NCBI GenBank assembly: GCA_051294905.1
Contig: CM119373.1
Span: 34,658,001 to 34,722,000, forward strand
Source of the DNA: Botryllus schlosseri
Lineage: Eukaryota
DNA length: 64,000 bases
Direction: 5' to 3'
Shown here: positions 1,283 through 37,655 of the stretch, piece by piece
Numbering within the stretch: the stretch's first letter is position 1
Layout: each line of letters starts with the position of its first letter
The notes under the pieces: model-generated
The model's database searches: none
What the model was told of the DNA's origin: nothing
What the model saw: only the letters and a program-made list of their open reading frames with translations
Program-made: the position numbers and the translations under genes

Positions 1283-2338
1283 ATGGATAATGAAATGGAA
1301 CATAGAGAAATACAGCCAAATTTTAATCGGAAGACCGTTACTGGAAATGGAGGCGCAATCTTTGAATGCGACATTTGTGGAATGAAGTATCTATCCAAGA
1401 AGGGATTGCAGATGCATGTATCCAGACACTTAAGAAAGTTTGAATGTGACATTTGTGGGCATGCTTCATCATCCAAATATCATTTGAAATGTCACATGCT
1501 CATTCACAGCGACGTAAGAGAGTTTGAATGCGATTTCTGTGAAAAGGCGTTCACCCGAAAGTATGATCTGACCCAGCACATGGCTATACACAGCGACACC
1601 AAGGACTTCTTTTGCCTTGTTTGCGGTAAGATGTATTCTACTGAGAAACTTTTGCAGAGGCATGTGTCTGAACACCAACGAAACTTTTCCTGCGACGTTT
1701 GCGGACTTGCTTTTCAATCGAAAAAAACCTTGAAGCGCCACATGCTCATTCACACTAACGTGAAAGAGTTTAAATGTGATGTCTGTGAAAAGACCTTCGC
1801 CCAGAAGTTTACCCTGACTAGGCACATGAACATTCACACCGACACCAAAGGCTTCTTGTGTGATATTTGCGGTAAACTCTTTCCGTTGAAACATCACCTG
1901 CATCAGCACATGGATATCCACGCTGTTCTTAGAAGATATGGCTGTGAGCTATGTGATATGGCCTTCAGGAATAGGAGCAATCTGACCAGACACGTAAAGA
2001 TTCATGATGTGCCTGATACATTTGTATGTCCCATATGTGGACTAGGTTTTGCGAGGTACTCTGGATTGAGACACCACCTTCCAGTGCACATGAATGAAAA
2101 AATGTTTCATTGTGAAATATGCGGAAAGGCCTATTTCAGCGAAGATAAAGTTACAAGACACATGAAACTACATGTCAGCGACAATTTGGAATGTCCAGTA
2201 TGCGGATTAGGTTGCAGTAACTTGAAAAGTCACTTTATTTTGCATGTGAACGAAAGGAAATTTCAATGCGATGTATGCGGAAAGGCATTCTTGAGAAAAG
2301 GTGATGTTTTCGGCCATATGAAAATGCATTTCCAATAG
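1283..2338 (+). CDS. Tandem C2H2 zinc-finger protein, 351 aa, 12 finger units (one shortened); N-class a, C-class X
   Basis: Open ORF with C-x2-C-x12-H-x3-H repeats; ccATGG start context; in-frame TGA at 1277 upstream of the ATG. Confidence 0.93.
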   Translation: MDNEMEHREIQPNFNRKTVTGNGGAIFECDICGMKYLSKKGLQMHVSRHLRKFECDICGHASSSKYHLKCHMLIHSDVREFECDFCEKAFTRKYDLTQHMAIHSDTKDFFCLVCGKMYSTEKLLQRHVSEHQRNFSCDVCGLAFQSKKTLKRHMLIHTNVKEFKCDVCEKTFAQKFTLTRHMNIHTDTKGFLCDICGKLFPLKHHLHQHMDIHAVLRRYGCELCDMAFRNRSNLTRHVKIHDVPDTFVCPICGLGFARYSGLRHHLPVHMNEKMFHCEICGKAYFSEDKVTRHMKLHVSDNLECPVCGLGCSNLKSHFILHVNERKFQCDVCGKAFLRKGDVFGHMKMHFQ

Positions 2339-3317
2339 TCTTACTCGAGCTGCGTGTCCATTTCTATTTTCATTCATCAATAGTGAAATGCAAAGTAAGA
2401 TTGAAATATTCGAGTCATTTCCCGAAGCAAGGATGAAAAAATTTTGGATTGGAAAAACTTTTCAGATTTTTTAGCATGATACATGACACACTCAAATGAC
2501 GTCAGTGTGTCAAAATTGAAGGTTGCGCTTTTCTGTAAGTTTAGTGGAAACGGAATTCCGTCAACACTGCCATGAAGTTGAAGATACCAAAAGCAAATTT
2601 TGACTTTTCAACAGACTGAAGAACCTGATTATGCAGTCTCAATATTATTGCACTACTTACACTGTCGTCAAGTTGTAAATATCAAATTTGAAGTAAGCTG
2701 TCTATCTCTTTATTAAAGATAATGAGCTCTGCGTTTCCTACTCTTATTTGAGTATCAATGACTATGCTAACACCTCTTACAGCAATATACGAATTAGTTG
2801 TCTCATTGATTAACATGGTACAGTACCTATATACAATACTGCATGCACACGATTTTGTAGCATTGAATATATTATTGAATCACAGCAAGTGTTTAATGTG
2901 ATATCAGCCCGTTTGAGTACCAATGACTACTTTTACGACACCTAGCAATACGAGCTACTGAGTATCGTAACTATTTATTTAAAACGAGATTTACTACATC
3001 TCTACAACCAGTGGTAATGCTTGACCAGATTTACTGCATGCACAGTGCACATAGTTTTATCAATGTTGATGTTGTCGAATCACTTCAAGTGTTTTATGTG
3101 ATGTCTGCAGACCATAGCCGAGATAGTCCATTCGCTTTTGAAACCCTCCTTATTTTGAACACTTCGACTGTGGGTGGCCGAATGTGAATGTGAGACGTCT
3201 AATTCAATTTCATTTATGGATGTCATACAGAAAAATGTTTTGTTGCTAAATCCATAATCATGAGCCATCTGAACTCATTTATTTTTACTATGCTCTTGCA
3301 GATAAATAGGCCTAGAC

Positions 3318-3408
3318 CAGGGGTTCTCAACCTGGGGGTCGCGGGAGGCTCTCAGGGGGGGGCGCGAGAAATTGATGAAGTAAGTATAGGGGGGGGGGGG
3401 GGGTATAA
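3318..3408 (+). mobile_element. Solo left end of a Buster/Charlie-type hAT MITE
   Basis: Starts CAGGGGTTCTCAACCTGGGGGTCGCG after TAGAC; no right TIR seen; fused directly to ZNF coding sequence after a 15-G run. Confidence 0.6.
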
Positions 3409-3845
3409 ATTTGCGGCAAACTCTTCGCACTAAAACATAATCTGTTTCGACACATGAACATCCGCGCCGAGTTGAAAAGATATGTATGTGGTCTGTGTGG
3501 CATGGCCTTAACATCGATTGGCACTCTGTACAAGCATATAAAGATTCCTGCTGAGCCTAACAATTTAGCTGTCGCACCAAATAAGAATATTTTATGTCCT
3601 ATATGTGGACTAGGTTTTACGAGGAACTCCGGATTGAGACGGCATCTTCCAATTCATCTGAATAAAAAGAAGTTTCGATGCGAAATTTGCGGAAGGCATT
3701 TTTTGAGAAAGGCAGGCGTTCCACAACACATGAAAATCCATTTCAACAAGAATTTTGAATGTCCATTATGTGGGATAAGCCTGTCGAGTAGGAAAGCCTT
3801 GCGATATCACTGGCTCATCCACAGGAATCAGAAAAAATTTCAATG
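3409..3845 (+). pseudogene. Internal fragment of a C2H2 ZNF paralog (c-type upstream region, Y-type fingers), cut at both ends by MITE termini
   Basis: Reads CGKLFALKHNLFRHMNIRAELKRYVC...RYHWLIHRNQKKFQ; lacks start and last finger; acceptor AG retained at 3300-3301. Confidence 0.85.
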
Positions 3846-4323
3846 GGGTTGCATTTAAAACAAACGGTGTTTTAAACAAATACCCTTTTGAAAAAAAGAA
3901 TTTTGCCATAATTGTTTAAATACTTTCAGAAAATCGTGCAGTATATGAGCCTACAGACGATTTGCACCCAAAATAGTCGATGTATATGATGTAGGCTGGC
4001 TGGAACCTTGGAAATCGTCGTCGGCTCAACAGTTTGTGCGGGCACAGAATGGGTGTTCTGATGATCATGACCGCCGACCGTAAAAATGCTTCATAATGAA
4101 GTATTCCTGATTAAAGATATATTTGGTCTGTTTATGACAGTGATCGGAAGCCCTTTTCGCCGAAGATGCCATATTTACCCTACATTTTCAATTGTCAATA
4201 TTTTGACGTCACAACTAAATAGTCTTGATGTCATGGCTAAAAAAATCAAAAACATGTTTTAAACAAGGGCTTTGTTTTAATCACGTTTGATTTGAATTGA
4301 TTATTGTTTTAAATGCAACCCTA
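3844..4323 (+). mobile_element. Non-autonomous hAT (Ac-type) MITE, family with TIR YGGGGTTGCATTTAAAAC
   Basis: TIRs TGGGGTTGCATTTAAAACAA / TTGTTTTAAATGCAACCCTA; internally similar to 11368-11855; right flank paralogous to that copy, left flank replaced. Confidence 0.85.
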
Positions 4324-4500: not shown

Positions 4501-5625
4501 ATGGATAACGAAATTGGAAATAAAGAAATACAACCAGATTTGAATCAACATACCACTACTGGAAATGGTGGCGTAAGCTTCGAATGCGATATTTGCGGCA
4601 TCAAGTATCAATCAAAAAAGGGATTCCAGATGCATGTATCCAGACACCTAAGAAAGTTTGCATGTGACTTTTGCGGGCGTGCTACATCTTCCAAATATCA
4701 GTTGAAACGTCACATGCGCGTTCACAGTGACGTAAAAGAGTTTGAATGTGATGTCTGTAGAAAGGCGTTCACCCAGAAGTATAATTTGACCCAGCACATG
4801 ACAATACACAACGCCACCAAGGACTTCTTTTGTCATGTTTGCGGTAAGATGTATTCTTCTGAGAAACGTTTGCGGAGGCATGTGTCTGAACACCAACGAA
4901 ACTTTTCCTGTGACTTTTGCGGTCTTGCTTTTCCATACAAAGGCATATTGCAACGCCACATGCTCATTCATGGTTCCACAAAACTGTTTAAATGCAATGT
5001 CTGTGAAAAGACCTTCACACAGAAGACTACGTTGACCACGCACTTGAACATTCACACCAATACCAGGGACTTTTTGTGTGATGTTTGCGGTAAACTCTTC
5101 GCATTAAAACATAATCTGTATCAGCACATGGCCATCCACTCCGGTCTGAAAAGATATGTCTGTGAGCTCTGTGATATGCCCTTCACGTTGAGGAGCAATC
5201 TGTACCAACATGTGAAGATTCATGGCGTGTCTAATACCTCCGCTGTCGCATCAAGTAAAAATATTGCATGTCCAATATGTGGACTAGGTTTTGCAAGGAG
5301 CTATGGATTGCGAAGGCATTTTCTGCATATGCACCTAAATGGATTGAAACAGCACCTCCCACTGCTCCTGAATGAAAATAAGTTTGAATGCGAAATATGC
5401 GGAAGGCGTTTTTTGAGACAGGATGGCGTTTCACTACACATGAAAATCCATTTCAACAAGAATTTTGAATGTCCAGTGTGTGGGATAAGCGTGTCAACTC
5501 GGGGAGCTTTGCGAAAACACTGGCTCATCCACGTGAATGAAAAGAATTTTCAATGTGAAATTTGTGGAATAGCATTCTTGAGAAAACGGAATGCCTCAGA
5601 TCACCTGAAAATACATTTCAAATAG
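4501..5625 (+). CDS. Tandem C2H2 zinc-finger protein, 374 aa, 12 fingers; N-class a, C-class Y
   Basis: Open ORF, ccATGG, acceptor AG at 4434-4435, in-frame TGA upstream at 4462. Confidence 0.93.
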   Translation: MDNEIGNKEIQPDLNQHTTTGNGGVSFECDICGIKYQSKKGFQMHVSRHLRKFACDFCGRATSSKYQLKRHMRVHSDVKEFECDVCRKAFTQKYNLTQHMTIHNATKDFFCHVCGKMYSSEKRLRRHVSEHQRNFSCDFCGLAFPYKGILQRHMLIHGSTKLFKCNVCEKTFTQKTTLTTHLNIHTNTRDFLCDVCGKLFALKHNLYQHMAIHSGLKRYVCELCDMPFTLRSNLYQHVKIHGVSNTSAVASSKNIACPICGLGFARSYGLRRHFLHMHLNGLKQHLPLLLNENKFECEICGRRFLRQDGVSLHMKIHFNKNFECPVCGISVSTRGALRKHWLIHVNEKNFQCEICGIAFLRKRNASDHLKIHFK

Positions 5626-6802: not shown

Positions 6803-7615
6803 ATGGATCGTCAAAATCAAGTAATGGAACCATGTTTGAATCGCCAGGCCGTTACTGGAATTGGCAGTACAAGCTTAGAATGCTATTTCTGCAGCAAGAT
6901 GTATTCTTCTAAGAAAGTATTGAAGAAGCATTTGTCCGGACACCAACAAGACTTTAGCTGCGACTTTTGCGGGCTTACTTTTCAATACCAACACAGTTTA
7001 CAGCGCCACACGCTCGTTCACAGCAACGCAAGAGAGTTTAAATGTGATGTTTGTGAACAGACCTTCGCCCAGAAGTGTTCCCTATCCAGGCACATGAACA
7101 TTCACACAGACAACAAAGGCTACTTGTGTGATATTTGCGGTAAACTTTTTCTGTTAAAACATAATCTGCATCGACACATGGACATCCATGCTAGTTTTAA
7201 AAGATATGCCTGTGAGCTATGTGATATGGCCTTCAGGGATAGGAGCAATCTGACCAGACACATAAAGATTCATGGTGTGCCTAATACATTTTTATGTCCG
7301 ATATGTGGACTAGGTTTTACAAGAAACACTGGATTGAGAAAGCACGTTCCAGTGCACTTGAATGAAAAAAAGTTTCAATGTGAAATATGCGGAAAGGCCT
7401 TTTTGAGCAAAGAAAAAGTTACAGCACACATGAAAGTACATGTCAGCGAGAATCTGGAATGTCCTGTGTGCGGATTTGGTGTTTCGAGTCAAATTAACCT
7501 GAGGAGTCACTTTATCGTGCATGTGAATGAAAGGAAGTTTCAATGTGATGTATGCGGGAAGGCATTCTTGAGAAAGGCAGAGGTTTCCAGCCATATGAAA
7601 ATGCATTTCAAATAG
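6803..7615 (+). CDS. Tandem C2H2 zinc-finger protein, 270 aa, 9 fingers; N-class b, C-class X
   Basis: Open ORF, accATGG, acceptor AG at 6729-6730, in-frame TGA at 6749. Confidence 0.93.
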   Translation: MDRQNQVMEPCLNRQAVTGIGSTSLECYFCSKMYSSKKVLKKHLSGHQQDFSCDFCGLTFQYQHSLQRHTLVHSNAREFKCDVCEQTFAQKCSLSRHMNIHTDNKGYLCDICGKLFLLKHNLHRHMDIHASFKRYACELCDMAFRDRSNLTRHIKIHGVPNTFLCPICGLGFTRNTGLRKHVPVHLNEKKFQCEICGKAFLSKEKVTAHMKVHVSENLECPVCGFGVSSQINLRSHFIVHVNERKFQCDVCGKAFLRKAEVSSHMKMHFK

Positions 7616-8915: not shown

Positions 8916-9725
8916 ATGAATCATCATGTACAAAATGGTGAAATGGTACTATATTTGAATCATAAGACTGGTATTATGAATGGACTCGCAAGCTCAGAAT
9001 GTGATGTTAGCGGGAAGACATGCTCTTCTAGGAAAGGATCGCGGAAGCATGTTTCGGGAAGCCAAAGAAAATTTTCCTGCGACTTTTGCGGGCTTGCTTT
9101 TCAAACGAAACAACAGTTAAAACGTCACATGCTCATTCACACTAACGTGAAAGAGTTTGAATGTGAAGTCTGTGGAAAGACTTTCGCCCTGAAGGGTACC
9201 CTATCCACGCACATGAACATTCACACCGACACTGAAGGCTTCTTGTGTGATATTTGCGGTCAACTTTTCTCGTGGAAACATAGTTTGCATCGACACATGG
9301 ACAACCACGCTGGTCTTAAAAGATATGGCTGTGAGCTATGTGATATGGCCTTCATGTATAAGAGCACTCTGTACAGACACATGAAGGTTCATGGTGGGTC
9401 TAATACATTTGTATGCCCCATATGGGGACTAGGTTTTGCGAGGAACTCCGGATTGACACAGCATCTTCCAGTGCACTTGAATGAAAAAAAGTTTCAATGT
9501 GAAATATGCGGAAACGCCATTTTGAGAAAAGATAAAGTTACAAGACACATGAAAGTACATGTCAGCGACAATTTGCAATGTCCAATATGCGGATTAACTT
9601 GCAGTAACTTGAAAAGTCACTTTATCATGCATGTGAATGAAAGAAAATTTCAATGCGATGTATGCGGAAAGGCATTCTTGAGAAAAGGAGACGTGATCAG
9701 CCATATGGAAATGCATTTCAAATAG
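8916..9725 (+). CDS. Tandem C2H2 zinc-finger protein, 269 aa, 9 units (first degenerate, one C->W, one shortened); N-class c, C-class X
   Basis: Open ORF; acceptor AG at 8849-8850. Confidence 0.88.
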   Translation: MNHHVQNGEMVLYLNHKTGIMNGLASSECDVSGKTCSSRKGSRKHVSGSQRKFSCDFCGLAFQTKQQLKRHMLIHTNVKEFECEVCGKTFALKGTLSTHMNIHTDTEGFLCDICGQLFSWKHSLHRHMDNHAGLKRYGCELCDMAFMYKSTLYRHMKVHGGSNTFVCPIWGLGFARNSGLTQHLPVHLNEKKFQCEICGNAILRKDKVTRHMKVHVSDNLQCPICGLTCSNLKSHFIMHVNERKFQCDVCGKAFLRKGDVISHMEMHFK

Positions 9726-12045: not shown

Positions 12046-13275
12046 ATGGATAATGAAAATGAGAATAAAGAAATACAGCCAGATTTAAATCAACGGACCA
12101 TTACTGGAAGTGGTCGCGTAAGCTTCGAATGCTATATTTGCGGCATCAAGTATCAATCAAAGAAGGGATTCCAGAAGCACGTATCCAGGCACCTAAGAAA
12201 GTTTGCATGTGACTTTTGCGGGCGTGCTACATCTTCCAAATTTCAATTGAAACGTCACATGCTCGTTCACAGTGACATAAAAGAGTTTGAATGTGATGTC
12301 TGTAGAAAGGCGTTCACCCAGAAGTATAATTTGACCCGGCACATGACTATACACAGCGCCACCAAGGACTTCTTTTGTCATGTGTGCAGTAAGATGTATT
12401 CTACTGAGAAACGTTTGCAGAGGCATGTGTCTGAACACCAACAAAACTTTTCCTGTGACTTCTGCGGTCTTGCTTTTCCATACAAATGCACGTTACAACG
12501 CCACATGCTCATTCACGCCTCCATAAAAGAGTTTAAATGTGATGTCTGTGAAGAGTCCTTCACACAGAAGGCTACCTTGACCAGGCACTTGAACATTCAC
12601 ACCAATACCAGGGACTTTTTGTGTGATGTTTGCGGTAAACTCTTCTCGTTAAAACATAATCTGTATCAGCACATGGCCATCCACTCCGGTCTGAAAAAAT
12701 ATGCATGTGACCTATGCGATATGGCCTTCACATTGAGGAGCAATCTGTACAAACATATAAAGATTCATGGCGTGTCTAATACCTCAGCTGTCACATCGAG
12801 TAAGAATATCGCATGTCCTATATGTGGACTAGGTTTTGCAAGGAGCTATGGATTGCGAAGGCATTTTCTGCATATGCACCTATATCTGTACAAACATATA
12901 AAGATTCATGGCGTGTCTAATACCTCTGCTGTTTCATCGAGTAAGAATATTGCATGTCCAATATGTGGTCTCGGTTTTACGAGGAACTATGGATTGAGAA
13001 AGCACCTTCCACTGCACCTGATTGAAAAGAAGTTTCAATGCGAAATATGCGGAAGGCGTTTTTCGAGACAGGATAGTGTTCCACGACACATGAAAATCCA
13101 TTTCAACAATAATTTTGAATGTCCAGTATGTGGGATAAGCGTGTCGACTCGGGGAGCCTTGCGAAAACACTGGCTCATCCACGCGAATGAAAAGAATTTT
13201 CAATGTGAAATTTGTGGAATGGCATTCTTGAGGAAACGGAATGCCTCTGATCACATGAAAATACATTTCAAATAG
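12046..13275 (+). CDS. Tandem C2H2 zinc-finger protein, 409 aa, 13 fingers with an internal 141-bp duplication; N-class a, C-class Y
   Basis: Open ORF, ccATGG, acceptor AG at 11979-11980. Confidence 0.93.
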   Translation: MDNENENKEIQPDLNQRTITGSGRVSFECYICGIKYQSKKGFQKHVSRHLRKFACDFCGRATSSKFQLKRHMLVHSDIKEFECDVCRKAFTQKYNLTRHMTIHSATKDFFCHVCSKMYSTEKRLQRHVSEHQQNFSCDFCGLAFPYKCTLQRHMLIHASIKEFKCDVCEESFTQKATLTRHLNIHTNTRDFLCDVCGKLFSLKHNLYQHMAIHSGLKKYACDLCDMAFTLRSNLYKHIKIHGVSNTSAVTSSKNIACPICGLGFARSYGLRRHFLHMHLYLYKHIKIHGVSNTSAVSSSKNIACPICGLGFTRNYGLRKHLPLHLIEKKFQCEICGRRFSRQDSVPRHMKIHFNNNFECPVCGISVSTRGALRKHWLIHANEKNFQCEICGMAFLRKRNASDHMKIHFK

Positions 13276-14476: not shown

Positions 14477-15280
14477 ATGGATCGTCAAAATCAAGGAATG
14501 GAACCAAGTTTTAATTGCCAGTCAGTTACTGGAATTGGCAGTACAAGCTTAGAATGCTATTTCAGCAGCAAGATGTATTCTTCTAAGAAAGAATTGCAGA
14601 GGCATTTGTCCAGACACCAACAAGACTTTAGCTGCGACTTTTGCGGGCTTGCTTTTCAAACGAAACAACAATTAAAACGTCACATGCTCATTCACACTAA
14701 TGTGAAAGAGTTTAAATGTGATGTCTGTGGAAAGACCTTCTCCCTCAAGTGTAACCTATCTAAGCACATGAACATACACACCAACACCGAAGGATTCTTG
14801 TGTGATATTTGCGGCAAACTTTTTCCGTGGAAACATAGTCTGAATCGACACATGAACATTCACGCTGGTCTTAAAAGATATGCATGTGAGCTATGTGATA
14901 TGGCCTTCAGGTATAAGAGCAATCTGTACCGACACATGAAGGTTCATGGTGTGTCTAATACATTTGTATGTCCTATATGTGGACTAGGTTTTCCAAGGAA
15001 CTCCGGATTGACACAGCATCTTCCAGTGCACTTGAATGAAAAAAAGTTTCAATGTGAAATATGCGGAAAGGCCTTTTCGAGAAAAGATAAAGTTACAGCA
15101 CACATGAAAGTACATATCAGTGAGAATTTGGAATGTCCAGTATGCGGATTAACTTGCAGTAACTTGAAAAGTCACTTTATTTTGCATGTGAATGAAAGGA
15201 AATTTCAATGCGATGTATGCGGAAAGGCATTCTTGAGAAAAGGAGATGTGATCAGCCATATGGCAATGCATTTCAAATAG
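14477..15280 (+). CDS. Tandem C2H2 zinc-finger protein, 267 aa, 9 units (first C->S degenerate, one shortened); N-class b, C-class X
   Basis: Paralogous start accATGG at 14477 (MDRQNQ); acceptor AG at 14404-14405. Confidence 0.9.
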   Translation: MDRQNQGMEPSFNCQSVTGIGSTSLECYFSSKMYSSKKELQRHLSRHQQDFSCDFCGLAFQTKQQLKRHMLIHTNVKEFKCDVCGKTFSLKCNLSKHMNIHTNTEGFLCDICGKLFPWKHSLNRHMNIHAGLKRYACELCDMAFRYKSNLYRHMKVHGVSNTFVCPICGLGFPRNSGLTQHLPVHLNEKKFQCEICGKAFSRKDKVTAHMKVHISENLECPVCGLTCSNLKSHFILHVNERKFQCDVCGKAFLRKGDVISHMAMHFK

Positions 15281-16353: not shown

Positions 16354-17194
16354 ATGAATCATCAAGTACAAAATGGTGAAATGGTACCATATTTGAATCA
16401 CCAGAATGTTACTATAAATGGACTCGCAAGCTCAGAATGTGATGTTAGCGGAAAGACATGTTCTTCTAAGAACGGATCACGGATGCTCGTGTCGGGAAGC
16501 CAAAGAAAACTTTCCTGTGACTTTTGCGGGCTTGCTTTTCAAACGAAACAACACTTGAAACGTCACATGCTCATTCACACTAACGTGAAAGAATTTAAAT
16601 GTGAAGTCTGTGGAAAAACTTTCGCCCGGAAGGGTAGCCTATCCGCGCACATGAACATTCACAGCGACACCAAGGACTTGTTGTGTGATATTTGCTGCAA
16701 ACTCTTTGCACTGAAACGTAGTCTGTTTCAACACATGGATATCCACGCCGGTTTAAAAAGGTATGCATGTGAGCTGTGTGAAATGGCGTTTACAGCATGG
16801 AATACTTTGTACCGACATAAAGATTCATGCTGTGTCTAATACTGTCGCTGCTGTACCAAGTAAGAATATTGTATGTCCCATATGTGGACTCGGTTTTGCG
16901 AGGAACTCCGGATTGAGACATCATCTTCCAGTGCACTTGAATGAAAAAAAGTTTCAATGTGAAATATGTGGGAAGGCGTTCTTGAGAAAGGATGACGCTG
17001 CACAACACAATAGAATACATTTCAACGATAAGATCGCATGTCCAATATGCGGATTAAGGATTTCGAGTCGCGGTACCTTCCAAAATCACATTCTCGTGCA
17101 TTATAATGAAAAGAAATTTCAATGTGAAATTTGTGGAATGGCATTCTTGAGAAAACGGAATGCCTCTGATCACATGAAAATACATTTCAAATAG
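16354..17194 (+). pseudogene. C2H2 ZNF paralog (N-class c, C-class Z) with a single 2-nt frameshift near 16818
   Basis: cgacataaagattcat versus paralogous cat-ata-aag-att-cat; two overlapping ORFs 16354-16839 and 16763-17194 join into one finger array. Confidence 0.85.
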
Positions 17195-17672: not shown

Positions 17673-18626
17673 CCCTGCTCCAGTGCCAGTGTTCATGGTC
17701 AGTGCAACAGTAACAAAGTGAAAAGTAGATTGGAATTTTCGATTCAACTGATAAACAAAGTTGAAGATTTAGGACAGTTCTTCCCAACCTCTTTGTCTTT
17801 GGGGATCCCTTTTGATCCGTCAAGGCAGTCCGTGCCCTCGAGTGTACATTCAAATTTAGTTCAAGTGTTCTGCAACCGTTACTACAGGCTAGTGTACTGA
17901 AAGCATTCATTTTCTTCAGTTGAAATGTATACGAAACTATGTGGAATTTTTGAAGACTTTTATTGTTTTAAAGCAAATTAACTTGATGAGATTTCTGCGA
18001 ATGCATGTCAGAAGCAATTCTTGACATATATTGTCATGTCCTTGAAAATGGCAGTCGCATATCAACTTCGTCTATTTGCCCTAACTCGGAAAATCGTAAA
18101 TTAGGTTACCAATCATATTGCAAGCATCCAACCAAGCTTTCGGTGTGACGTCGCGACCGGTGTGTGATAATTTGCAGAATTGTTTATATTTTATAAAAAA
18201 TCATTTGCCTGTATTAAGCTTTTAATACCTGATCACTCTTAATGCATGCATTCAATTTTGTATCGTTGAATGACTTCGTGTGTTTGATGTAATATCGACT
18301 GACCTATAAGTGGCTATGTTGTTATACCATTCGCCTTTGAGACCCAAGTTTCTAGTTAAGCCGTATTGTGTTTTTGGATAAATGATGCATAACCAGAACG
18401 ATAATAATTAGCAGTCGATTCGGGAATATCTGGATATCCTATTACGGATGGTCAGGGTTTATGTCCGAATGAGAATGTGCAATGGAAACCATTCTTTAAT
18501 TAATAATCATGAGCTTTTTGACCTCGTTCGTTTTGTACAGTGTTTTTAAGATAAATATCGAATTAATTTAGGACGAAACAGATTGTAATAATCACCCCGC
18601 TATTGAATCTTCACCATCGAGGTGCC

Positions 18627-19852
18627 ATGGATCAAGAAATTCCAAATACTGAAATGCAACCATGTACGAATCATCAAACAATTGCTGAATGTGGCAGGGT
18701 GGAAAGCTTTGAATGTGATGTTTGCTGCAAAATTTATCTTACTAAGATTGGATTGCAGAGGCAAGTGTCCATACACCAAAGAAAGTTTGTATGTGACTTT
18801 TTGTGAGCTTGCCTCGCCATCAAATTATCACCTTAAACAGCACATACTCATTCACGGTGAGTTTGAATGCGATGTCTATGGAAAGTCGTTCACCCGTAAG
18901 TATAATGTGACGAAACACATGACTATACACAACGATACCATGGACTTCTTTTGTGATGTTTGCGGCAAGATGTATTTTATTGAGAGAGGTTTGCAGAAGC
19001 ATGTCTCTGGACACAAACGAAAGTTTTCCTGTGACTTTTGAGGTCTTGCTCTCCCATAAAAATCTACCTTCAAACGCCACGTACTCATTCACGTCACCAT
19101 AAAAGAGTTAGAATGTGATGTCTGTGGAAAGGCGTTCACCCAAAAAGCTGGTTTGACCAAGCATATGCATGTTCACACCGGCACCAATGACTTCTTGTAC
19201 GATGTTTGCTCTTAACTGTTTTCTTCAGAACAGAATCTGTATAGACACATGAACCGTCACTGCAGTTTGAAAATATATGCGTTTGAGATTTGCGACTTGG
19301 CAGTTACCTCGAGAAACAATCTGTACGTGCATATGAAGAGGATTCATGTGCCTAAGACGTCTGCCGAGAATCACGTATGTCCCGTATGTGGACTACGTCT
19401 TGAGAGTAAAAACAACTTGCAAAAGCACCGTCTAGTGCACACGAATGAAAGGAAGTTTCAATGTGAAATATGTGGAAAGGCATTTTTGAAAAAATATCAC
19501 GTGCGAACACATGAAAGTACATTTCAACGAGAATTTCATATGTCTATTATGCGTACTAGAGGTTTCGAATCGCGGCAACATGCGAACTCACTATCTCATA
19601 CACCGTAATGAAAGGAATTTTCTGTGTGAAGTATGCGGGAAGCAATTTCTGAGACAATGTGACGTTAGACAACATGCGGAAAGGCATTTTGCATGTCCAG
19701 AATGTGGAGTAATGCTTTCGAGTCGCCTTTACTTGCGGAAACATCTTCTCGCCCACGCGAATGAAGAGAGGAAGTTTGAATGTGAAAGCCACGGAAAGTC
19801 ATTATTGGGAAAAGCGACTGCTTCTGAACACATGAGGATACATTTAAAATAG
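18627..19852 (+). pseudogene. Full-length d-class ZNF pseudogene, paralog of 36468
   Basis: MDQEIPNTEMQPC start; multiple stops and frameshifts split it into ORF pieces 18603-18806, 18622-19041, 19249-19608 and 19511-19852. Confidence 0.9.
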
Positions 19853-20448: not shown

Positions 20449-21009
20449 AACAATAAATCTTTAATTTTAAAACATAGAGACTAAACGGAGGAAACTAATG
20501 GCACAGTCATCGATCGCAACACCAATAGAACTAGATTCGAACCCCAGCTCTGCCTTACTTCTGTGTGCAGGAGGTTTATCTAAGCTCCTTATCGTTAACC
20601 TCACTGCGATTGCAGGGTATGAATATCCCAGAGTGTTTCGATGCCTGCAGGTTGCAGCGATTTGATAAATACTATTCTGTACTACTGTGTTATATTTATA
20701 CAATATACATGCATGATTTAAATGGTATCATAATTCTTTAAATACAGTAGGAAGCTATACACTAAATTTCGTCGTTTACTTAAGTGATTGATTTCACTTT
20801 TGCTGCCAACGTTTCTGTACTATTATGTTCTACAAGACGGACACTTATACGATAGTAAAAGCAACTATGAAGCTGACACAGATTGTGTAAGTTCATTGTC
20901 GGTTGCTACTGCATAGTGTATAGTGCATGGATCATTGGATCATCATTCTTTCAGCGTAATCACACATCTTGAATTATAACAAACTAAGTACCATTTGTTG
21001 TGTCATAAC

Positions 21010-21640: not shown

Positions 21641-21801
21641 ATAAATCGCGCGAGGCGCGAACAATTTTCCAGGTGATAGTGGCTTCCCGCCCCCTACTTT
21701 GAGAACCACTGCTATAGGGAATGGTCTTTGTCATAATTGAAATATTTTCTAAACTTCTCATCATATCATCATTGCCAAATCCTTTTCATGACGTCGCAAA
21801 T

Positions 21802-22528: not shown

Positions 22529-23931
22529 CGGCAATCTTTCTGCAGAAGAACAACTCATTGATTTACAAAAAACCTTGTTTTTCTTTAATCCCTGTTTCCA
22601 CAAAAATGGATGAGCTATATCTGTCTTTTTACGAATCATATACCATGGGTGGAACAGCAATCAGTATTTTACTGCCATGTCCATCTCCATGACTATGTTA
22701 AGATACCTTTTTTTATTGGAAATTTATAGCTGTAAACGTGAAAGGCAGCTTCGAATTAAAGACGAAATGCGGATATTTTTTCAACAATGCAACCACATTT
22801 TAGTCGTATATGTGTTCGTGTACCTTAGCATACCCATTATCCATTGCATTGCCACGTAATAGTTTCACAAAAAGCAACTTTCTTGTAAGTGTTCCGTGAG
22901 TGTTTTAAAACTTTTCCAGTGTGCCAACAACCCAAAAAAGTTTATGAATCATTGGTTTATACTTTGACACTAGTAAATGAATGTACACTGATATTCTGTG
23001 ACATAAATATCAGCAATTTTGGTGCGTAGCGAGATCACTCCTGCATTCATCGTTATCTTTATCCGACTAGCACGTATCAGACAACTAAAAAAAGTCATCA
23101 ACACCCAAGTGACCCGCGCGATAGTTCGAAAAACTGCATGTTACGCTTTGGCCAAAAGGGTTGGCCACCTCTGATTAGTATAAAGTTACAGCAGCTGATG
23201 TGCCAAAAAGAGCATCCCTACACCATGTGAATATTTAATTACTGTTGTGTTGTTATATTATTATTCCATAGACTAATTCATTTGTTACACGGAAATGACA
23301 TCTTATCACGACCTGACATCTATTTTGACTTCCCCCGCATGCCATATTATGTTTGTTGCTCGTTCTCTTTATGTCATCTGCTGTCACTTTTGTTTCAGTG
23401 TGCCTGCCTCTAATTTGCAGTGCTTTTGTGAAATCGAGGTTCTACATCCACTACAAGCTGTTTTGACTTGTCCTGTAAACCGCTACCACTGCTTGTAATT
23501 GAGTAGAAATTTACACCTTTACTTCTTATACTTAAGAACCAATGACTGCTTCGGTCAAATTTGTCGATACACAAGTAATCACGGAAGCATATTTATTTTT
23601 ATTTTTAGATTTATTGCATGTATCAGTCATTCAGTCAGTAATAATACCCAACCAGGTTTTGTTTCATTGAATCACTTCTCTTGCTTGACACTGTATCTGC
23701 AGACCAAATATATATTAAAGCGCTACTGTTGGTGTTTGGTACCAGACTACTTTATAACAATATGGCCGTTTGTGTTTAGAAATGATTATTTGCAGAATTA
23801 CGCTAGTAAACCCTAACCATTTGAACTCACCCATTTTATACTGTATTCTCACAGATATATATAGAGATATAATTTAAGACTGATCGAATCGTCACAGTTA
23901 TCCGTACAATATAATCTACCAACAAGTTACC

Positions 23932-24657
23932 ATGGATCATCAAAGTCAAGAAATGAAACCATGTTTAAATCGCCTGGCCGTTACTGAAATTGGCAGTACG
24001 AGCTTTGAATGCGACTTTTGCGGGCTTGCTTTTCAAAAGAAACATAACTTGAGACGGCACAAGATCATTCACACCAACGTGAAAGAGTTTAAATGTGATG
24101 TCTGTGAAAAGACCTTCGCCCGGAAGTGTGCCCTAACTAGGCACATAAACATTCACACCGACACCAAAGGCTTCTTGTGTGATATTTGCGGTAAACTCTT
24201 TCCGTTGAAACATAGTCTGCATCGGCACATGGACATCCACGCTGGTCTGAGAAGATATGCCTGTGAGCTATGCGATATGGCCTTCAGGTATAGGAGCAAT
24301 CTGTGCAGACACATAAAGATTCATGGTGTGTCTAATACATTTGTATGTCCCATATGTGGACTAGGTTTTCCGAGGAACTCCGGATTAAGACAGCACCTTC
24401 CAGTGCACTTGAATGAAAAAAAGTTTCATTGTGAAATATGCGGAAAGGCCTATTTCAGCGAAGGTACAGTTACAAGACACATGAAAGTACATGTCAGCGA
24501 CAATTTGGAATGTCCCGTATGCGGATTAGGTTGCAGTAACTTGAAAAGTCACTTCATTTTGCATGTTAATGAAAGGAAATTTCAATGCGATATATGCGGA
24601 AAGGCATTCTTGAGAAACGGGGATGTTTTCAGCCATATGGAAATGCATTTCAAATAG
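23932..24657 (+). CDS. Tandem C2H2 zinc-finger protein, 241 aa, 8 units; N-class b (first finger deleted), C-class X
   Basis: Open ORF, accATGG, acceptor AG at 23853-23854. Confidence 0.92.
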   Translation: MDHQSQEMKPCLNRLAVTEIGSTSFECDFCGLAFQKKHNLRRHKIIHTNVKEFKCDVCEKTFARKCALTRHINIHTDTKGFLCDICGKLFPLKHSLHRHMDIHAGLRRYACELCDMAFRYRSNLCRHIKIHGVSNTFVCPICGLGFPRNSGLRQHLPVHLNEKKFHCEICGKAYFSEGTVTRHMKVHVSDNLECPVCGLGCSNLKSHFILHVNERKFQCDICGKAFLRNGDVFSHMEMHFK

Positions 24658-25694
24658 TGTTACTCGAGCTGCGTGTCCATTTCTGTTTTCATGTGTCAGT
24701 CGTGAAATGGAAAGTAAGACTGAAATATTCTAGTCATTTCTCGAAGCAAGGATGAAGGGGGAACATTTGAAAATTTTGATTGAGAAAACTTTTTCAGATT
24801 TTTTAGCATGATACATAACAGACACGGAGGTTACGCATTTCTGTAAATTTAGTGGAAACGGTATTCGGTCAACACCGCCATGAAGTTGAAGATACCAAAA
24901 ACAAATTGTGGCGTTTCAACAGACTGAAGAACATGATCATGCAGTCTCAACAGTATTGCAGTACCTACACTGCCTGGAAGTTACAAATACAAATCTTTAA
25001 TTAATCTGTCGATTTATCTCTTTACTAAATGTTGACTACGATAATGAACCCTGCAAGTTAGGCTACAACTACAACAGTGTTTCATATACTTTTATTTGAC
25101 TACCAATTACTATACTTTCACCTCTTATAGCACTATACGAATAAGGTATTACATGGACTTATCTGATATAATACCTATTTAGGTATACTGCATGCACACG
25201 ATTTTGTAACATTGAGTACAATAATTAATCACTAGCTTTTAATGTGATATTGGCCTGTTTGAGTAACGATGACTACTTTTACCACATCTACTATACGAGC
25301 TTTTGAGTACCGCAACTTTTTATGTAAAAAATGATTTAATACATGTATCAACCAGTGATCATGCCTAACCAGATTTATTGCATGCACGCATTGATTTTCA
25401 ATTTTGATTTGTCGAATGATGGATGTAGGCTAATATCGGCAGACCCATAGTTAAGATGGTCCATGCGACTTTGAAACCTTCCTTGTTTTTAATAGTACGA
25501 CTGTGGGTGGCCGAATGTGAGACGTCTTATTCAACATGATTTATGGAAGTCCTAAAAAGAAATGTTTTATTGCTGAATTCAAAATCATGAGCAATGTGAA
25601 CTCATTCATTTTTTATTATGTTTCCACAGATTAATATAGACTGATCTAATTGTGACGATCAACCGTACAATAGAATCTCTACCAACAACGTACC

Positions 25695-26612
25695 ATGGAT
25701 CATCAAGTACAAAATGGCGAAATGGTATCATATTTGAATCAGCAGAATGTTACTATGAATGGACTCGCTAGCTCAGAATGTGATGTTAGCAGGAAGACAT
25801 GCCCTTCTAAGAAGGAATCGCCGAAGCGTATGTGGGGAAGGGAAGGAAAATTTTCCTGCGAATTTTGCGGGCTTGCATTTCAAAGGAAACAGGTATTAAA
25901 ACGACACTTACTCGTTCACACTAACATGAAAGAGTTTAAATGTGATGTCTGTGAAAAGACCTTCGCCTGGAAGTGTGCCCTATCCAGGCACATGCACATT
26001 CACACCGACACCAAGGACTTCTTGTGCGATATTTGCGGCAAACTCTTCGCACGGAAAGATAGTCTGTTTCAACACATGGATATCCACGCCGGTTTAAAAA
26101 GGTATGCATGTGAGCTGTGTGATATGGAGTTTACAGCAAGGAGCAGTTTCTACAAGCATATAAAGGTTCATGCCGTGTCTAATACTGTCGCTGCCGTACC
26201 AAGTAAGAATATTGTATGTCCCTTATGTGGACTTGGTTTTACAAGTAACTACGCATTGAGACGGCACCTTCCAGTGCACCTGAACGAGAAGAAGTTTCAA
26301 TGCGAAATATGCGGAAGGCGTTTTTTGAGACAGGATGGCGTTCCACTACACATGAAAATCCATTTCAACAAGAACTTTGAATGTTCAGTATGTGGGGCAA
26401 GAGTGTCGACTCGGAAAGCCTTGCGAAATCATTGTCTCATCCACGGGAATGAAAAGAAATTTTATTGTGAAATTTGTGGAAAGGCATTCTCGAGGAAAGG
26501 CAATGCCTCCGATCACATGAAAATACATTTGGGATCGTGCTGGCCAAGCTGCAGGTCCATGTCGAGTGTGCGGTCGGTCGCGGCCGCTGTTCAGTCACAA
26601 TATTGTCATTAG
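25695..26612 (+). CDS. Tandem C2H2 zinc-finger protein, 305 aa, 9 units (first degenerate), extended C-terminus; N-class c, C-class Y
   Basis: Open ORF, accATGG, acceptor AG at 25628-25629; ancestral catttcaaatag stop context replaced. Confidence 0.9.
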   Translation: MDHQVQNGEMVSYLNQQNVTMNGLASSECDVSRKTCPSKKESPKRMWGREGKFSCEFCGLAFQRKQVLKRHLLVHTNMKEFKCDVCEKTFAWKCALSRHMHIHTDTKDFLCDICGKLFARKDSLFQHMDIHAGLKRYACELCDMEFTARSSFYKHIKVHAVSNTVAAVPSKNIVCPLCGLGFTSNYALRRHLPVHLNEKKFQCEICGRRFLRQDGVPLHMKIHFNKNFECSVCGARVSTRKALRNHCLIHGNEKKFYCEICGKAFSRKGNASDHMKIHLGSCWPSCRSMSSVRSVAAAVQSQYCH

Positions 26613-27735
26613 ATTGGAAATTTCGAGTCAGGGCGAAGCAGGGTAATGGACAAGACACGCAGTTCCATGTGACAAGTCAATTATTTTTTTTTAATTGGTT
26701 TTTCGCACTCCATTTCCAGTTGCCACTGAGTCAAGTCCCAGTCGGGTAGCAGAGGGTCGACTTCGAGTCATAGGGTTAATATTCGAGTCCGAGTCCAAAT
26801 CATTGTATTCACTGTGCATTCAAGTCATATTTGAATAGTGATTTATCGTGAGTCATGACGCATTAGTAAAAACAGGTAACGTCAGAGTGTATACATAGAT
26901 CTGATATCATGTGGCAATCTAGTATGTTAACGAGATAACCCAAACACAATCTGGCACGTATTTTTCCTACCGCCCCATGCCACTTCAGTTTCATCGCTAC
27001 AGTCCTTTTTATGCTATCTTCTGTTGCTTTTCATTCAGTGTTCTGGCCTCGTTTTCCAGTACTTTTCAGATCTTAAATTTTTACGGCCATATAAAGTAGT
27101 TTTTGCATGTCTTAGTAATAGCTACTTCTACTTGTAACCAGATTCTGGTGTGTGTGTATGTGAGTATCGTATTTTTTTTAATTGTATTTCATGGTGTAAC
27201 CTGGTATAATGCCTAATCAAGTTTACTGCATGCACACGGTTTATATCATTGAGTTTACTTACCATTATTGAATCACTTTGCGAATTTCATGCGATATCAG
27301 TAGACTTTGACACCCTCTGGAGTTTGCGTTTGTCCGTTACATGTTTTGAAGGAGACATAACCGGCATGCAATTTTGCACTGCACGCAGATATACCTAGAA
27401 CAGGGGTGGGATACCTGCGGCCGTGGACACGTAATTCAATCGTTGAGAGCTTCATTTGATATTCAAATTTTCTACGCGTGAATAAATGCGACTTCATTTT
27501 TCAATTTTAATATAGTAGCGGCCTTTGCAATCTGAGCCCCAGTGTTGCGACAGCCCTTGTCCAAATGAGGATGTGTGATGAGTTTTCAACTTCGATTGTG
27601 GAACACAAAGACATGTTTCTTCCTGAATTGAAAATCACGAACCTTTTGAAGTCACTCATTTTCTGTTATATTTTGCAGATTAAAATCGAGTTGAGTTAGG
27701 ACAAAACGATATATACTGACTAAGTATCATGGATC

Positions 27736-28894
27736 ATGGATCATCATATTGAAAATGAAGGAATGGAAGTTCATTTGAATCACCCGTGCCTTAGTGGAAG
27801 CAGCTGTGTAAGCATAGAATGTGATGTTTGCGGCAAAATCGATCTCACTGAGGAAGGATTGCAGAGTCATGTATGTGGACACAAAAAAAACTTTGCCTGC
27901 GACATTTGCGGACTTGCTTTTCAAAATAAATTTCGCTTGAAACGTCACATGCTGATTCACAGTAACGTTAAAAAGTTTGAATGTGAAGTATGTGGAAAAG
28001 GCATTAGGCTAGTTTAACCCAGCACATGAACGTTCACACCAAGGACTTCGATGCCAGATACTTTTGTGATGTTTGCGGCAACATGTTTGCTCCCAAGATA
28101 GGGTTGCGACAGCATGGCGCCAGACAGCAAAGAAATTATGCATGTGACTTTTGTGGTATTGCTTTTTCGTACAAATCTGACTTGAGACGTCACGTGCTCA
28201 TTCACGGCTCCGCAAAAGAGTTTGAATGCGATGTCTGTGAAAAGACCTTGACACAGAAGAGTACGTTCTCATTCACCTTGACACAAAAGATTTTGAATGC
28301 AATTTTTGGGGAAAGGCCCTCTCCCAGAAGCATACTTCGACCAGGCACATGGTCATTCACAACGTCACCCAGGACGTCTTATGCGATATTTGCGGCAAGC
28401 TATTCGTGCAGAAACATAGGTTGTTTCAACACATGGATATCACTCCCGGTTTGAAAAGATATGTATGTGAGCTGCGTGACATGGCCTTTACGTTGAGGAG
28501 CAATCTGAACCAGCATATAAAGATTCGTGGTGTGTCCAATACTTCCTCTGTCGCATCGAATAATTATGTTGTGTATCCCATATGTGGACTAGGTTTCACG
28601 AGGAACTCCGGATTGACACAACACCTTCCAATACACCTGAATAAAAAGGAATTCCAGTGTGAAATATGTGGGAAGGCGTTCTTTAGAAAGGGCGGCGTTG
28701 CACAACACAATAGAATACATTTCAACGATAAGATCACATGTCCAATATGCGGATTAAGGATTTCGAGTCGCTGTGCCTTGCGAAATCACCTTGTCGTGCA
28801 TAATAATGAAAATAAATTTCAATGGGAAATTGGTGGAATGGCATTCTTAAGAAAACGGAATGCCTCTGATCACATGAAAATACATTTCAAATAG
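27736..28894 (+). pseudogene. e-class ZNF pseudogene with Z-type C-terminus and multiple frameshifts
   Basis: ORF pieces 27736-28017, 28026-28454 and 28349-28894; deletion near 28005 relative to the 32196 paralog. Confidence 0.9.
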
Positions 28895-28999: not shown

Positions 29000-29580
29000 T
29001 TGTTATGTGATGTTTGCAGTAAACTATATCCTACTGAGGAAGGATTGGAGAGTCATCTGTGTGGACACCAAAGAATCTTCACCTACGGCTTTTCCGGGCT
29101 TGCTTTTCAAAAGAAATATCGCTGGAACCTTCATGTGCTGATTCACATCAACGTAAAAAAGTTAGAATGCGATGTCTGTGGAAAGTCATTCACCCAGAAG
29201 CAGCATACGTTGAACGTGCACATGAACACTCACACCGACACCCAGGAATTTGTGTGCGGATTTTGCGGTAAACTCTTCCTGTTTCGTCTGAGTCGTCACA
29301 CTGGTTTGAAAAGTTATGAGTGTGAATTTTGTGGCATGGCCTTTACCTTGATGAACAATCTGTACATAAAGATCTGTATATAAAGATTCATGTTGTGCCA
29401 AATACCCTTGCTGTCGAATCGGAGTATTGTATGTCCCATATGTGAATTACGTTTTACGAAGAGGCATAATTTCCAAAAGCACCTTCTCGTGCATGGAAAT
29501 TAAATGAATTTTCAATGTGAAATATGTGGAAAGTCATTTTTGAGCAAATCAAATGCTTCGATAGCCACATGAAAACAGAA
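29000..29580 (+). pseudogene. 5'-truncated degenerate ZNF fragment behind a solo MITE end (28926)
   Basis: ORF 29000-29383 reads CDVCSKLYPTEEGLESH...CDVCGKSFTQK...CEFCGMAF; paralog of 17300-17672. Confidence 0.8.
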
Positions 29581-32195: not shown

Positions 32196-33454
32196 ATAGA
32201 TCATCACATTCAAAATAAAGAAATGGAAGTTCATTTGAATCACCCATACCTCAGTGGAAGTGGCCGCGTAAGCATAGAATGCGATGTTTGCGGCAATATC
32301 GATTTTACTGAGGAAGGATTTCAGAGTCATGTGTGTGGACACAAAAAAAACTTTGCCTGCGACATTTGCGGACGTGCTTTTCAAAAGAAATATCGATTGA
32401 AATGTCACATGCTGATTCACAGTAACGTGAAAAAGTTTGGATGTGAAGTATGTGGAAAGGCATTCATCCAGAAGGCTAATTTAACCCAGCACATGAACGT
32501 TCACACCAATGACTTCGATACCAGATACTTTTGCGATGTTTGCGCAACATGTTTTCTACCAAGATAGGGTTGCGACAGCATGTGGCTAGACACCAAAGAA
32601 ATTATGCATGTGGCTTTTGTGGTATTGCTTTTTCGTACAAATCTGACTTGAGACGTCACGTGCTCATTCACGGCTCCACAAAAGAGTTTGAATGCGATGT
32701 CTGTGAAAAGACCTTCACACAGAAGGGTACGTTGACCAGACACTTGAACATTCACACCAATACCAGGGACTTTTTGTGCGATGTTTGCGGCAAACTATTC
32801 GCGCTGAAACATAATCTGTTTCAACACATGGATATCCATGCCGGTTTGAAAAGATATGCATGTGAGCTGTGTGACATGGCCTTTACGTTGAAGAGCAATC
32901 TGAACCAGCATATAAAGATTCATGGTGTGTCCAATACTTCCGCTGTCGCATTGAATAAGAATGTTGCCTGTCCCATATGTGGACTAGGGTTCACGAGGAA
33001 CTCCGGATTGAGACAACATCTTCCAGTGCACTTGAATGAAAAAAAGTTTCAATGTCAAATATGTGGAAAGGCATTTTTGAGAAAATACGACCTGCCACCA
33101 CACATGAAACTACATTTGAACGAGAATTTGGAATGTTCCGTATGTGGAATTGGGGTTTCGAGTCGTGCTGGCTTGCGAAGTCACGTTCTCCTGCACAGAA
33201 ATGAAGCAAAGTTTCAATGTGAAATATGTGGGAAGGCATTCTTGAGAAAGGATGCCGTTGCAGGACACACTAGAATTCATTTCAACGAGAATTTGACATG
33301 CCCAATATGCGGAGTAAGGATTTCAAGTCGCATTGCCTTGAGAAAACACCTTCCCGTGCATGGAAATGCAAGGAAGTTTCGTTGTGAGGTATGCGGGAAG
33401 TCATTTTTGCAAAAATCAAATTATTCTAGGCACATGAAAGCACATTTCAAATAG
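32196..33454 (+). pseudogene. e-class ZNF paralog with ATG->ATA start change and a 1-nt frameshift near 32544; otherwise a long intact finger array
   Basis: gtaccATAgatcatcac start context; tgcgcaac versus tgcggcaac in the 27736 paralog; ORFs 32070-32567 and 32531-33454. Confidence 0.8.
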
Positions 33455-35781: not shown

Positions 35782-36467
35782 TTTTAGGGGGAGGGGCTTA
35801 TCGCTATGCTGTTGGCTTTTGAGGGAACAATTATTTCCGCATTGCATCATTTTCTTGCTATGTAACGGAAAAAAGTGTAATTTTGAATGTCCGTGAAATG
35901 GCAAAGTAACAAATTTGACAGCTCTGCAGGAACTAGGTTATACAACGGAACCTTTCGAGTATCTCATACCCTACTAATTCAACAAAAATTATAAATGCAC
36001 CTTTTTACTGCAACTTTTGTCAAATTAAGTGCAACTTTCTCGCGATTTTAGTGCAACAAAAACTTGCCCTACTGATCACTTTCACTGCATGCACTCAATT
36101 TTGCATCGTTGAATGACTTCGTGTGTTTGATGTAATATCGGGTTACCTAACTCGTAATGGTGTTGGATCATTCGCCTATGAGACCCAAGTTTCGAGTTAT
36201 GCCGTATCGTGTTTTTGGAGTAGATGAGTCATATTATCAATATGATATTAATTAGCAGTCGATTCGCGGATATCTGGATATCCTATTACGGCTGTGTTTA
36301 TGTCCAAATGAGAATGTTCAATAGAAATTGGAAACCATGCTTTAATAATCACGAGCCTTTTGGCCTCATTCGTTTTGTACAGTGGTTTTAGGATAAATAT
36401 CAAATTAATTTAGGACGAAACTGATTGTCATAATCACCCGCTATTGAATCTTTACCATCGAGGTACC

Positions 36468-37655
36468 ATGGATCAAGAAATTCCAAATCGTGAAATACAA
36501 TCATACTCGAATCATCACACTTTTGCTGAAAGTGGCAGGGTGGAAAGCTTTGAATGCGGTATCTGCTGCAAAATATATCTAAGTAGGAAGGGATTGCAGA
36601 GGCACGTGTCCTTACACCAAAGAAAGTTTGTATGTGACTTTTGCGGGCTTGCCTCACCATCAAATTATCACCTGAAACGTCACATGCTCATCCACGGGGA
36701 CATGAAAGAGTTTGAATGTGATGTATGTGGAAAGTCGTTCACTCTGAAGTATAATTTGACTAATCACATGTCTATACACAACGATACCAAGGACTTCTTT
36801 TGTGATGTTTGCGGCAAGATGTATTCTACTAAGAGAGGTTTGCAGAGGCATGTCTACGGACACAAACGAAAGTTTTCCTGTGACTTTTGCGGTCTTGCTT
36901 TCCCACACAAATCTACCTTGAAGCGCCACGTGCTCATTCACGTCACCGTAAAGGAGTTAGAATGCGATGTCTGTGGAAAAGCGTTCACCCTAAAAGCTAG
37001 TTTGACCAAGCATATGCGTGTTCACACCGGCACCAATGACTTCTTGTGCGATGTTTGCGGTAAACTGTTTCCTTCGAAACAGAATCTGTATAGACACATT
37101 AACTGTCACTACGGTTTCAAAAACTATGCGTGTGAGATTTGCGGCATGGCAGTTACCTCGAGACCTGTTCTGTACGCGCATATGAAAAGGATTCATATGC
37201 CTAAGACGTCTACCGAGAATCACGCATGTCCCGTATGCGGTCTGTGTCTTGCAAATAAAAACATCTTGCAAGAGCACCGTCTAGTGCACACGAATGAAAG
37301 AAAGTTTCAATGTGAGATATGTGGAAAGGCATTTTTGAAAAAATGTCACGTGCGAGCACACATGAAAGTGCATTTCAACGAGAATTTCCTATGTCTATTA
37401 TGCGGATTAGAGGTTTCGAATCGCGATAACTTGCGAGCTCATTATCTCGTACACCGTAATGAAAGGGGATTTCAGTGTGAAGTATGCGGGAAGTTATTTC
37501 CGAGAAGATGTGACGTTCGACGACACGCGAAAAGGCATTTTGACGGGAATTTGGCATGCCCAGTATGCGGAGTAAGGGTTTTGAGTCGCAGTTCCTTGCG
37601 GAAACACCTTATCACGCATGCGAATGAAAAGAGGAAGTTTGAATGTGAAATCTGA
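36468..37655 (+). CDS. Tandem C2H2 zinc-finger protein, 395 aa, 13 complete fingers; d-class; 14th finger lost to a premature TGA
   Basis: gtaccATGG at 36468; acceptor AG at 36390-36391; ancestral in-frame stop at 37713-37715. Confidence 0.88.
   Translation: MDQEIPNREIQSYSNHHTFAESGRVESFECGICCKIYLSRKGLQRHVSLHQRKFVCDFCGLASPSNYHLKRHMLIHGDMKEFECDVCGKSFTLKYNLTNHMSIHNDTKDFFCDVCGKMYSTKRGLQRHVYGHKRKFSCDFCGLAFPHKSTLKRHVLIHVTVKELECDVCGKAFTLKASLTKHMRVHTGTNDFLCDVCGKLFPSKQNLYRHINCHYGFKNYACEICGMAVTSRPVLYAHMKRIHMPKTSTENHACPVCGLCLANKNILQEHRLVHTNERKFQCEICGKAFLKKCHVRAHMKVHFNENFLCLLCGLEVSNRDNLRAHYLVHRNERGFQCEVCGKLFPRRCDVRRHAKRHFDGNLACPVCGVRVLSRSSLRKHLITHANEKRKFECEI

Follow-up and report, generated by a model that had tools for sequence, protein, structure and literature searches.

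Does a tandem cluster of C2H2 zinc-finger genes in the sea squirt Botryllus schlosseri, whose copies share one finger scaffold and differ in the helix residues predicted to read DNA, owe those differences to selection or to drift? The cluster lies on one chromosome, in and just upstream of the window analysed here (64,000 nucleotides of contig CM119373.1, assembly GCA_051294905.1, positions 34,658,001 to 34,722,000 of the forward strand). It comprises ~19 members within ~59 kb, with every copy on the + strand; 15 copies or fragments are located in the window between 1283 and 37655, and four further copies are located upstream of it (Table 1). The reading that we favor, with a probability of roughly two in three, is a tandem lineage-specific C2H2 array with a fixed scaffold, in which contact positions evolve at or above the neutral rate and a few of them are positively selected.

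The array appears to be a single C2H2 family restricted to its lineage, as far as the data go. In a search of the whole 495-Mb genome with the 241-amino-acid (aa) copy as query, close relatives (52-83% identity) were confined to C3:34636732-34695541, and the remaining matches were all at or below 46% identity. The 40 kb upstream of the window were also examined for fingers, and nothing beyond the four upstream copies was found in them. The best relatives in the public protein collection are just 30-35% identical, and none is closer than ~35%, which suggests that the family is private to this lineage and also rules out between-species estimates of the ratio of nonsynonymous to synonymous substitution rates (dN/dS, omega) and a comparison of orthologous clusters. 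At least six copies are broken or partial, which is approximately one third of the array. With ~19 same-strand copies in 59 kb, the locus is a tandem cluster with birth-and-death turnover, and the family turns over through duplication and decay.

The base specificity of C2H2 fingers is set by helix positions -1, 2, 3 and 6. The helix was numbered with the first His as +7, and the finger that follows the TNVKEFKC-type linker was termed finger B. A preliminary description had listed eleven finger B codes at these four positions, all distinct, and both the translations of the open reading frames (ORFs) and a six-frame scan confirm the eleven as listed. Two of these eleven copies are damaged: the copy at 16354 is frameshifted, and the copy at 32196 is frameshifted upstream of finger B. 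The upstream copies supply QISS, QITR, RTTR and QITR, and QITR thus occurs twice (U2 and U4). Among the 13 copies whose frame stays open from finger A through H, the last finger that they share, finger B carries 13 distinct codes, and C, C, F, K(+1), L(+4), H and H, described earlier as invariant, are identical in all 13 (alignment columns 30, 33, 37, 40, 43, 46 and 50).

The number of distinct codes was rejected as evidence of selection when taken alone, because the copies differ by a synonymous divergence (dS) of 0.1-1.2, at which neutral drift also makes most codes differ. The weight therefore rests on omega and on a comparison with random position sets. In the latter, all 3060 sets of four that can be drawn from the 18 remaining non-structural positions in finger B plus linker were counted; they yielded 6.1 distinct strings on average and at most 10, and none reached 13. 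The same control also singles out finger A (12 codes in 13 copies, p 0.009) and finger F (11 in 12, p 0.016), and it does not single out fingers C, D, E, G or H. The earlier remark that the two fingers following finger B vary as well is true in a weak sense: there are 7 codes among 13 copies for finger C and 6 among 8 for finger D, which is no more than in random position sets.

The 13 copies were aligned over eight homologous fingers (224 codons), with fingers A to F and H free of gaps, and the codons were divided into 32 contact, 144 other non-structural, and 48 zinc-ligand and core codons. Finger blocks have been swapped between copies. Trees of four segments conflict, and the separate segment trees reach a summed log-likelihood (lnL) of -4550 vs -4797 for a single tree; G10, for example, groups with G4/G6 over fingers A-B but with G2/G5 over fingers E-H. 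The copies are mosaics. Because of this conflict, segment-specific trees were used throughout and the single tree served for comparison only; its likelihood-ratio statistic (LRT) of 54 was rejected as the main result, since the segment trees fit far better. The codon models were run with our own GY94/F3x4 likelihood code, not with PAML or HyPhy, and its lnL under M0 equals that of iqtree to the fourth decimal. In 48 simulations with M1a as the null and the trees unchanged, the LRT of M2a vs M1a peaked at 4.9.

With fixed codon classes, omega is 1.37 at contact codons (confidence interval 1.20-1.55), 0.51 at other non-structural codons and 0.07 at zinc ligands and core. The contact class differs from the other non-structural class (LRT 84.5, p ~1e-20) and from 1 (LRT 7.65, p 0.006). 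Other helix-surface positions have an omega of 0.64, and the proposal that contact dN/dS would lie above that of other surface positions is thus borne out (p 2e-10). By finger position, omega is 1.66 at +2, 1.55 at +3, 1.20 at -2 and +6, 1.13 at -1 and 0.93 at +5; the rest are at or below 0.7. By finger, contact omega is highest in A (2.43), F (2.01) and B (1.55, p 0.04), with the others at about 0.7-1.4. The zinc ligands and the hydrophobic core are under strong purifying selection, which suggests that the open copies are functional now or were so recently.

Site models place approximately 5% of sites at an omega of about 3.5-4.1, with LRTs of 33.9 (M2a vs M1a), 34.3 (M8 vs M7) and 32.9 (M8 vs M8a). 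The M7 vs M8 comparison is the check that had been suggested for this locus, and after partition by segment trees the selected sites are concentrated at contact positions. Posterior probabilities exceed 0.8 at A+2, A+3, F+3 and F+6 and at one non-contact site; four of the five selected sites are therefore contacts, though contacts make up 14% of the codons (p 0.0016). Positive selection acts at a few contacts, mainly at -1, +2 and +3 of finger A and at +3 and +6 of finger F, with +2 of fingers B and G borderline. At the other extreme, Arg occupies A+6 and H-1 in every copy, with His nearly always at C+2 and Gly nearly always at E+3, and most contact positions of fingers C and E are frozen. As a class, the contact positions evolve at about the neutral rate or slightly above it, and this average hides both frozen and positively selected positions. 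The diversifying selection on specificity that had been proposed from finger B is thus supported in part, by the contact omega of 1.37 and the enrichment of the site class with omega ~3.5-4 at contacts; its placement is not, for the signal is centered on fingers A and F.

Just one non-contact site has a high posterior (P 0.89-0.99). It is alignment column 1, where the residue that immediately precedes the first Cys of finger A (1688-1690 in the first copy) reads V, A, S or E. This column is the junction of differing N-terminal cassettes with the shared core, and the signal there may reflect a mosaic boundary, not selection.

The result holds under several changes of trees and sampling. One tree per finger gives an LRT of 24.0 for M2a vs M1a (p 6e-6), with seven of eight selected sites at contacts, and dropping U1, G4 and G14 likewise leaves an LRT of 24.0. 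The eight strictly intact copies give an LRT of 14.8 (p 6e-4), and all four of their selected sites are contacts in fingers A and F. G1 and G9 are sister copies that differ at 16 contact-codon sites. Four independent sister pairs were compared directly. Nonsynonymous differences are found at 41 of 128 contact codons vs 84 of 576 other codons (p 1e-5), whereas synonymous differences are found at 11 of 128 vs 40 of 576 (p 0.57). The local mutation rate does not explain the signal.

Several observations weigh against positive selection at the contacts, and many of them are what would be expected if constraint had only been relaxed, that is, if the contacts drifted at an omega of ~1 since the paralogs are redundant or decaying, with no adaptive diversification. 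The pooled contact omega is only 1.25-1.39 across data sets, with p 0.005-0.09 against 1. It exceeds 1 in the full set (p 0.006), as had been expected, but the excess is modest and is no longer significant in the reduced sets, to 1.25 (p 0.09) when U1, G4 and G14 are dropped and to 1.30 (p 0.08) for the eight intact copies. Among the sister pairs contact omega spans 0.46 to 3.0, and two of the four pairs are below 1 (0.46 and 0.64). Most single contact sites do not differ from 1. Finger B, on which the preliminary description had focused, has site omegas of 1.66, 2.28, 1.55 and 0.99. Taken singly, three of these positions fit neutrality, and +2 alone is nominally above 1 (LRT 4.5), with a posterior of 0.57 on segment trees, 0.85 on per-finger trees and 0.97 on one tree. 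The N-terminal fingers 1-4 of four long-type copies have contact omegas of 0.55-1.05, and one third of the copies are pseudogenes. Four bulk RNA sequencing (RNA-seq) runs, of each of which 6-13% was read, gave a depth below 2, no splice joints and partial matches only over window positions 21000-26900, which hold two intact copies. Against relaxed constraint stand the site models. M8 beats M8a, in which the extra class is fixed at 1, and M2a beats M1a in all subsets, at values that the null simulations never approached. The structural omega of 0.07 argues that the open copies are maintained, and the strictly conserved contacts at A+6 and H-1 are contrary to a blanket relaxation. We therefore regard relaxed constraint by itself as unlikely, at about one chance in five by our estimate.

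An omega above 1 might instead be mimicked by paralogs that exchange sequence through gene conversion or unequal crossing-over, or by multi-nucleotide mutations. The segment trees plainly conflict, and the LRT drops from 54 on one tree to 34 on four and 24 on eight. Exchange between copies inside a segment could inflate omega further, and so could multi-nucleotide changes, which account for 9 of 41 contact-codon differences (22% involve two or more nucleotides) vs 13 of 84 other codon differences in the sister pairs. The likelihood code is also our own; it takes its branch lengths from M0 and leaves a single scale factor free. The per-finger trees nevertheless remain significant. Contact and non-contact codons interleave in the same 63-nucleotide fingers and share their genealogies, yet their omegas differ 2.7-fold, and contact codons show no excess of synonymous differences. 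An artefact of this type is improbable as the source of the signal. CpG hypermutability at Arg and other CpG codons, named beforehand as an explanation that could account for the contact replacements, can be dismissed: Arg is frequent at -1 and +6, and CGN makes up 53 of the 168 Arg codons, but the CpG observed/expected ratio is 0.96 for the window and 0.79 for the ORFs, the share of CpG-type differences at contact codons (9-16%) is no higher than elsewhere (11-13%), and masking all CpG-touching codons raises the contact omega to 1.61 with an LRT of 35.5.

The proteins are predicted to bind nucleic acid. The conserved middle fingers would serve as an anchor common to the paralogs, whose individual specificities would come from the variable fingers A, B and F. 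The contact changes may be driven by an arms race, with transposons, satellites or something else as the candidate opponent. A more specific proposal, to which we give little credence, is that a tunicate independently evolved an effector-less zinc-finger family in a KRAB/FiNZ-like role. The frozen fingers C-E would then hold a shared sequence, positive selection would keep adjusting fingers A, B and F to fast-changing targets such as transposons or satellites, and silencing would proceed by simple occupancy or through a separate partner, not through a repressor domain fused to the fingers.

The proteins consist of 25-45 residues ahead of the first finger, followed by 8-13 fingers. Pfam scores PF00096 (zf-C2H2) at 165-202 bits against a cut-off of 25.2, in 8-10 stretches per protein, and the six-frame scan finds 150 C-x2-C-x12-H-x3-H motifs, with all those inside the cluster on the + strand. 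The classical finger columns C, C, F, L, H and H vary little or not at all. Pfam reports zinc-finger families only, with no KRAB (PF01352; none at E<=0.01), ZAD (PF07776), BTB or SCAN domain. The linkers have the canonical length of seven residues from His to Cys and read TNVKEFK, TDTKGFL, AGLKRYA or GVSNTFV. They are not of the TGEKP type, and the sole kept linker residue is the Lys at linker position 4. Such linkers call for caution and likewise weigh on the reading above, in which DNA binding by the array is an assumption.

All open copies start at a conserved ATG in CCATGG, a good Kozak context. A conserved pyrimidine-rich motif ending in CGCAG/A, which resembles a 3' splice site, is located 75-95 nucleotides before the ATG in all copies (e.g. 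1190-1282 and 23840-23931), and in-frame stops lie between this motif and the ATG in nearly all of them. This arrangement suggests a spliced non-coding first exon, which was not located, and one coding exon. Within 21000-26900, the sole stretch with appreciable reads in all four RNA-seq runs is 21197-21590, where only partial matches with many differing loose ends were observed; it looks like a dispersed repeat.

Table 1. Members of the zinc-finger array. Positions refer to the window, except those of the upstream copies U1-U4, which carry the prefix L001 or L003; residues at helix positions -1, 2, 3 and 6 of finger B are given in parentheses.
Copy	Position	Strand	State	Fingers and other features
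G1	1283..2338	+	intact, 351 aa	12 fingers; finger A 1691, B 1775 (QFTR), F 2111
C-terminal gene fragment	3409..3858	+	dead partial copy	fingers C to G only
G2	4501..5625	+	intact, long-type, 374 aa	finger B 4993 (QTTT)
G3	6803..7615	+	intact, short-type, 270 aa	finger B 7043 (QCSR)
G4	8916..9725	+	open frame, 269 aa	finger E Cys->Trp (CPIWGLGF); finger B 9162 (LGTT)
G5	12046..13275	+	intact, long-type, 409 aa	internal duplication of D-E linker and finger E; finger B 12538 (QATR)
G6	14477..15280	+	intact, short-type	finger B 14717 (LCNK)
G7	16354..17194	+	likely pseudogene; frameshift between fingers D and E, two overlapping frames	finger B 16600 (RGSA)
G8	18622..19852	+	pseudogene, at least 3 frames	finger B remnant 19114 (QAGK)
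G9	23932..24657	+	intact, shortest (241 aa)	finger A 24010, B 24094 (RCAR), F 24430
G10	25695..26612	+	open, 305 aa	27-aa tail past last finger; finger B 25941 (WCAR); mosaic, N-terminal part like G4/G7, C-terminal part like G2/G5
G11	27724..28894	+	broken, several frames	finger B degenerate
G12	29000..29494	+	short broken fragment	few fingers
G13	32196..33454	+	frameshift near 32540 in N-terminal finger; open from finger A on	two extra C-terminal fingers; finger B 32693 (QGTR)
G14	36468..37655	+	most diverged copy; frame ends within last finger	finger B 36963-37025 (LASK)
U1	L001:8591-9259		truncated	finger B (QISS)
U2	L003:18-860		open	finger B (QITR)
U3	L003:3429-4292		open	finger B (RTTR)
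U4	L003:6867-7502		in-frame stop	finger B (QITR)

Individual copies show further rearrangements. The tandem duplication of the D-E linker and finger E in G5 spans 12814-13020, and its first copy ends in H-x4-H (HFLHMH); a decayed remnant of the same duplication is observed in G2 at 5269-5390. In G1, G4, G6 and G9, which form one subclade, the finger between F and the last finger (2192-2245, 9579-9632, 15134-15187 and 24511-24564) carries a common three-codon deletion. The resulting finger, C-x2-C-x9-H-x3-H (CPVCGLGCSNLKSHFILH), lacks helix positions -1 to +2; it is shortened and probably non-canonical.

Elsewhere in the window, a 368-aa open frame at 46911-48017 (+), unrelated to the array, has a weak CD20/MS4A-like membrane-domain match that falls short of the Pfam cut-off (E 1.5e-4), and its Ser/Thr-rich tail is repeated. 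The open frame at 60406-60861 (+) resembles the C-terminal part of a retrotransposon reverse transcriptase, an impression taken from its sequence. A transfer RNA scan of the window found nothing.

Fast-changing DNA-reading residues on a fixed finger scaffold are the classic mark of zinc-finger families that track moving targets, and the array invites comparison with three known systems. Some insect ZAD zinc-finger genes evolve fast. The ZAD-ZNF genes resemble the array as lineage-specific clustered C2H2 genes, and they differ from it in the ZAD domain, which was not found in the array proteins. The tetrapod KRAB-ZNF (KZNF/KZFP) genes are under positive selection at DNA-contacting residues (Emerson and Thomas, 2009, as cited in PMC10547256). 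They share with the array the tandem many-finger C2H2 clusters, the birth-and-death turnover, the conserved scaffold and the selection on contact residues. Unlike them, the array has no KRAB or other N-terminal domain, carries TNVKE/TDTKG/AGLKR-like linkers instead of TGEKP, numbers ~19 copies in 59 kb and belongs to a tunicate. Judged by its sequence, the array would thus fall outside both the KRAB-ZNF and the ZAD-ZNF families by domain content while resembling both in evolutionary mode.

The cyprinid FiNZ-ZNF genes offer a further parallel. Of the seven recent paralog clades that Wells et al. (2023, PMC10547256) submitted to M1a/M2a and M7/M8 tests, four showed positive selection, and in two clades dN/dS >1 was enriched at base-contacting residues. 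The FiNZ-ZNF genes were shown to be expressed at genome activation and to repress transposons, with ~700 genes in zebrafish and a conserved N-terminal FiNZ domain. The array is likewise a non-KRAB, lineage-specific ZNF expansion, and the same tests had the same outcome: as in the KRAB and FiNZ families, omega >1 is enriched at contacts, with LRTs of 14.8-35.5 across analyses. It differs in having 25-45 residues before the first finger in place of a FiNZ domain, and in its ~19 copies vs ~700 genes. With about a dozen short single-exon genes, a clear separation of constant from variable fingers and natural pseudogene controls, it is a tractable test case. This small effector-less sea-squirt cluster extends the pattern of the vertebrate families to the sister group of vertebrates and leaves the general picture unchanged.

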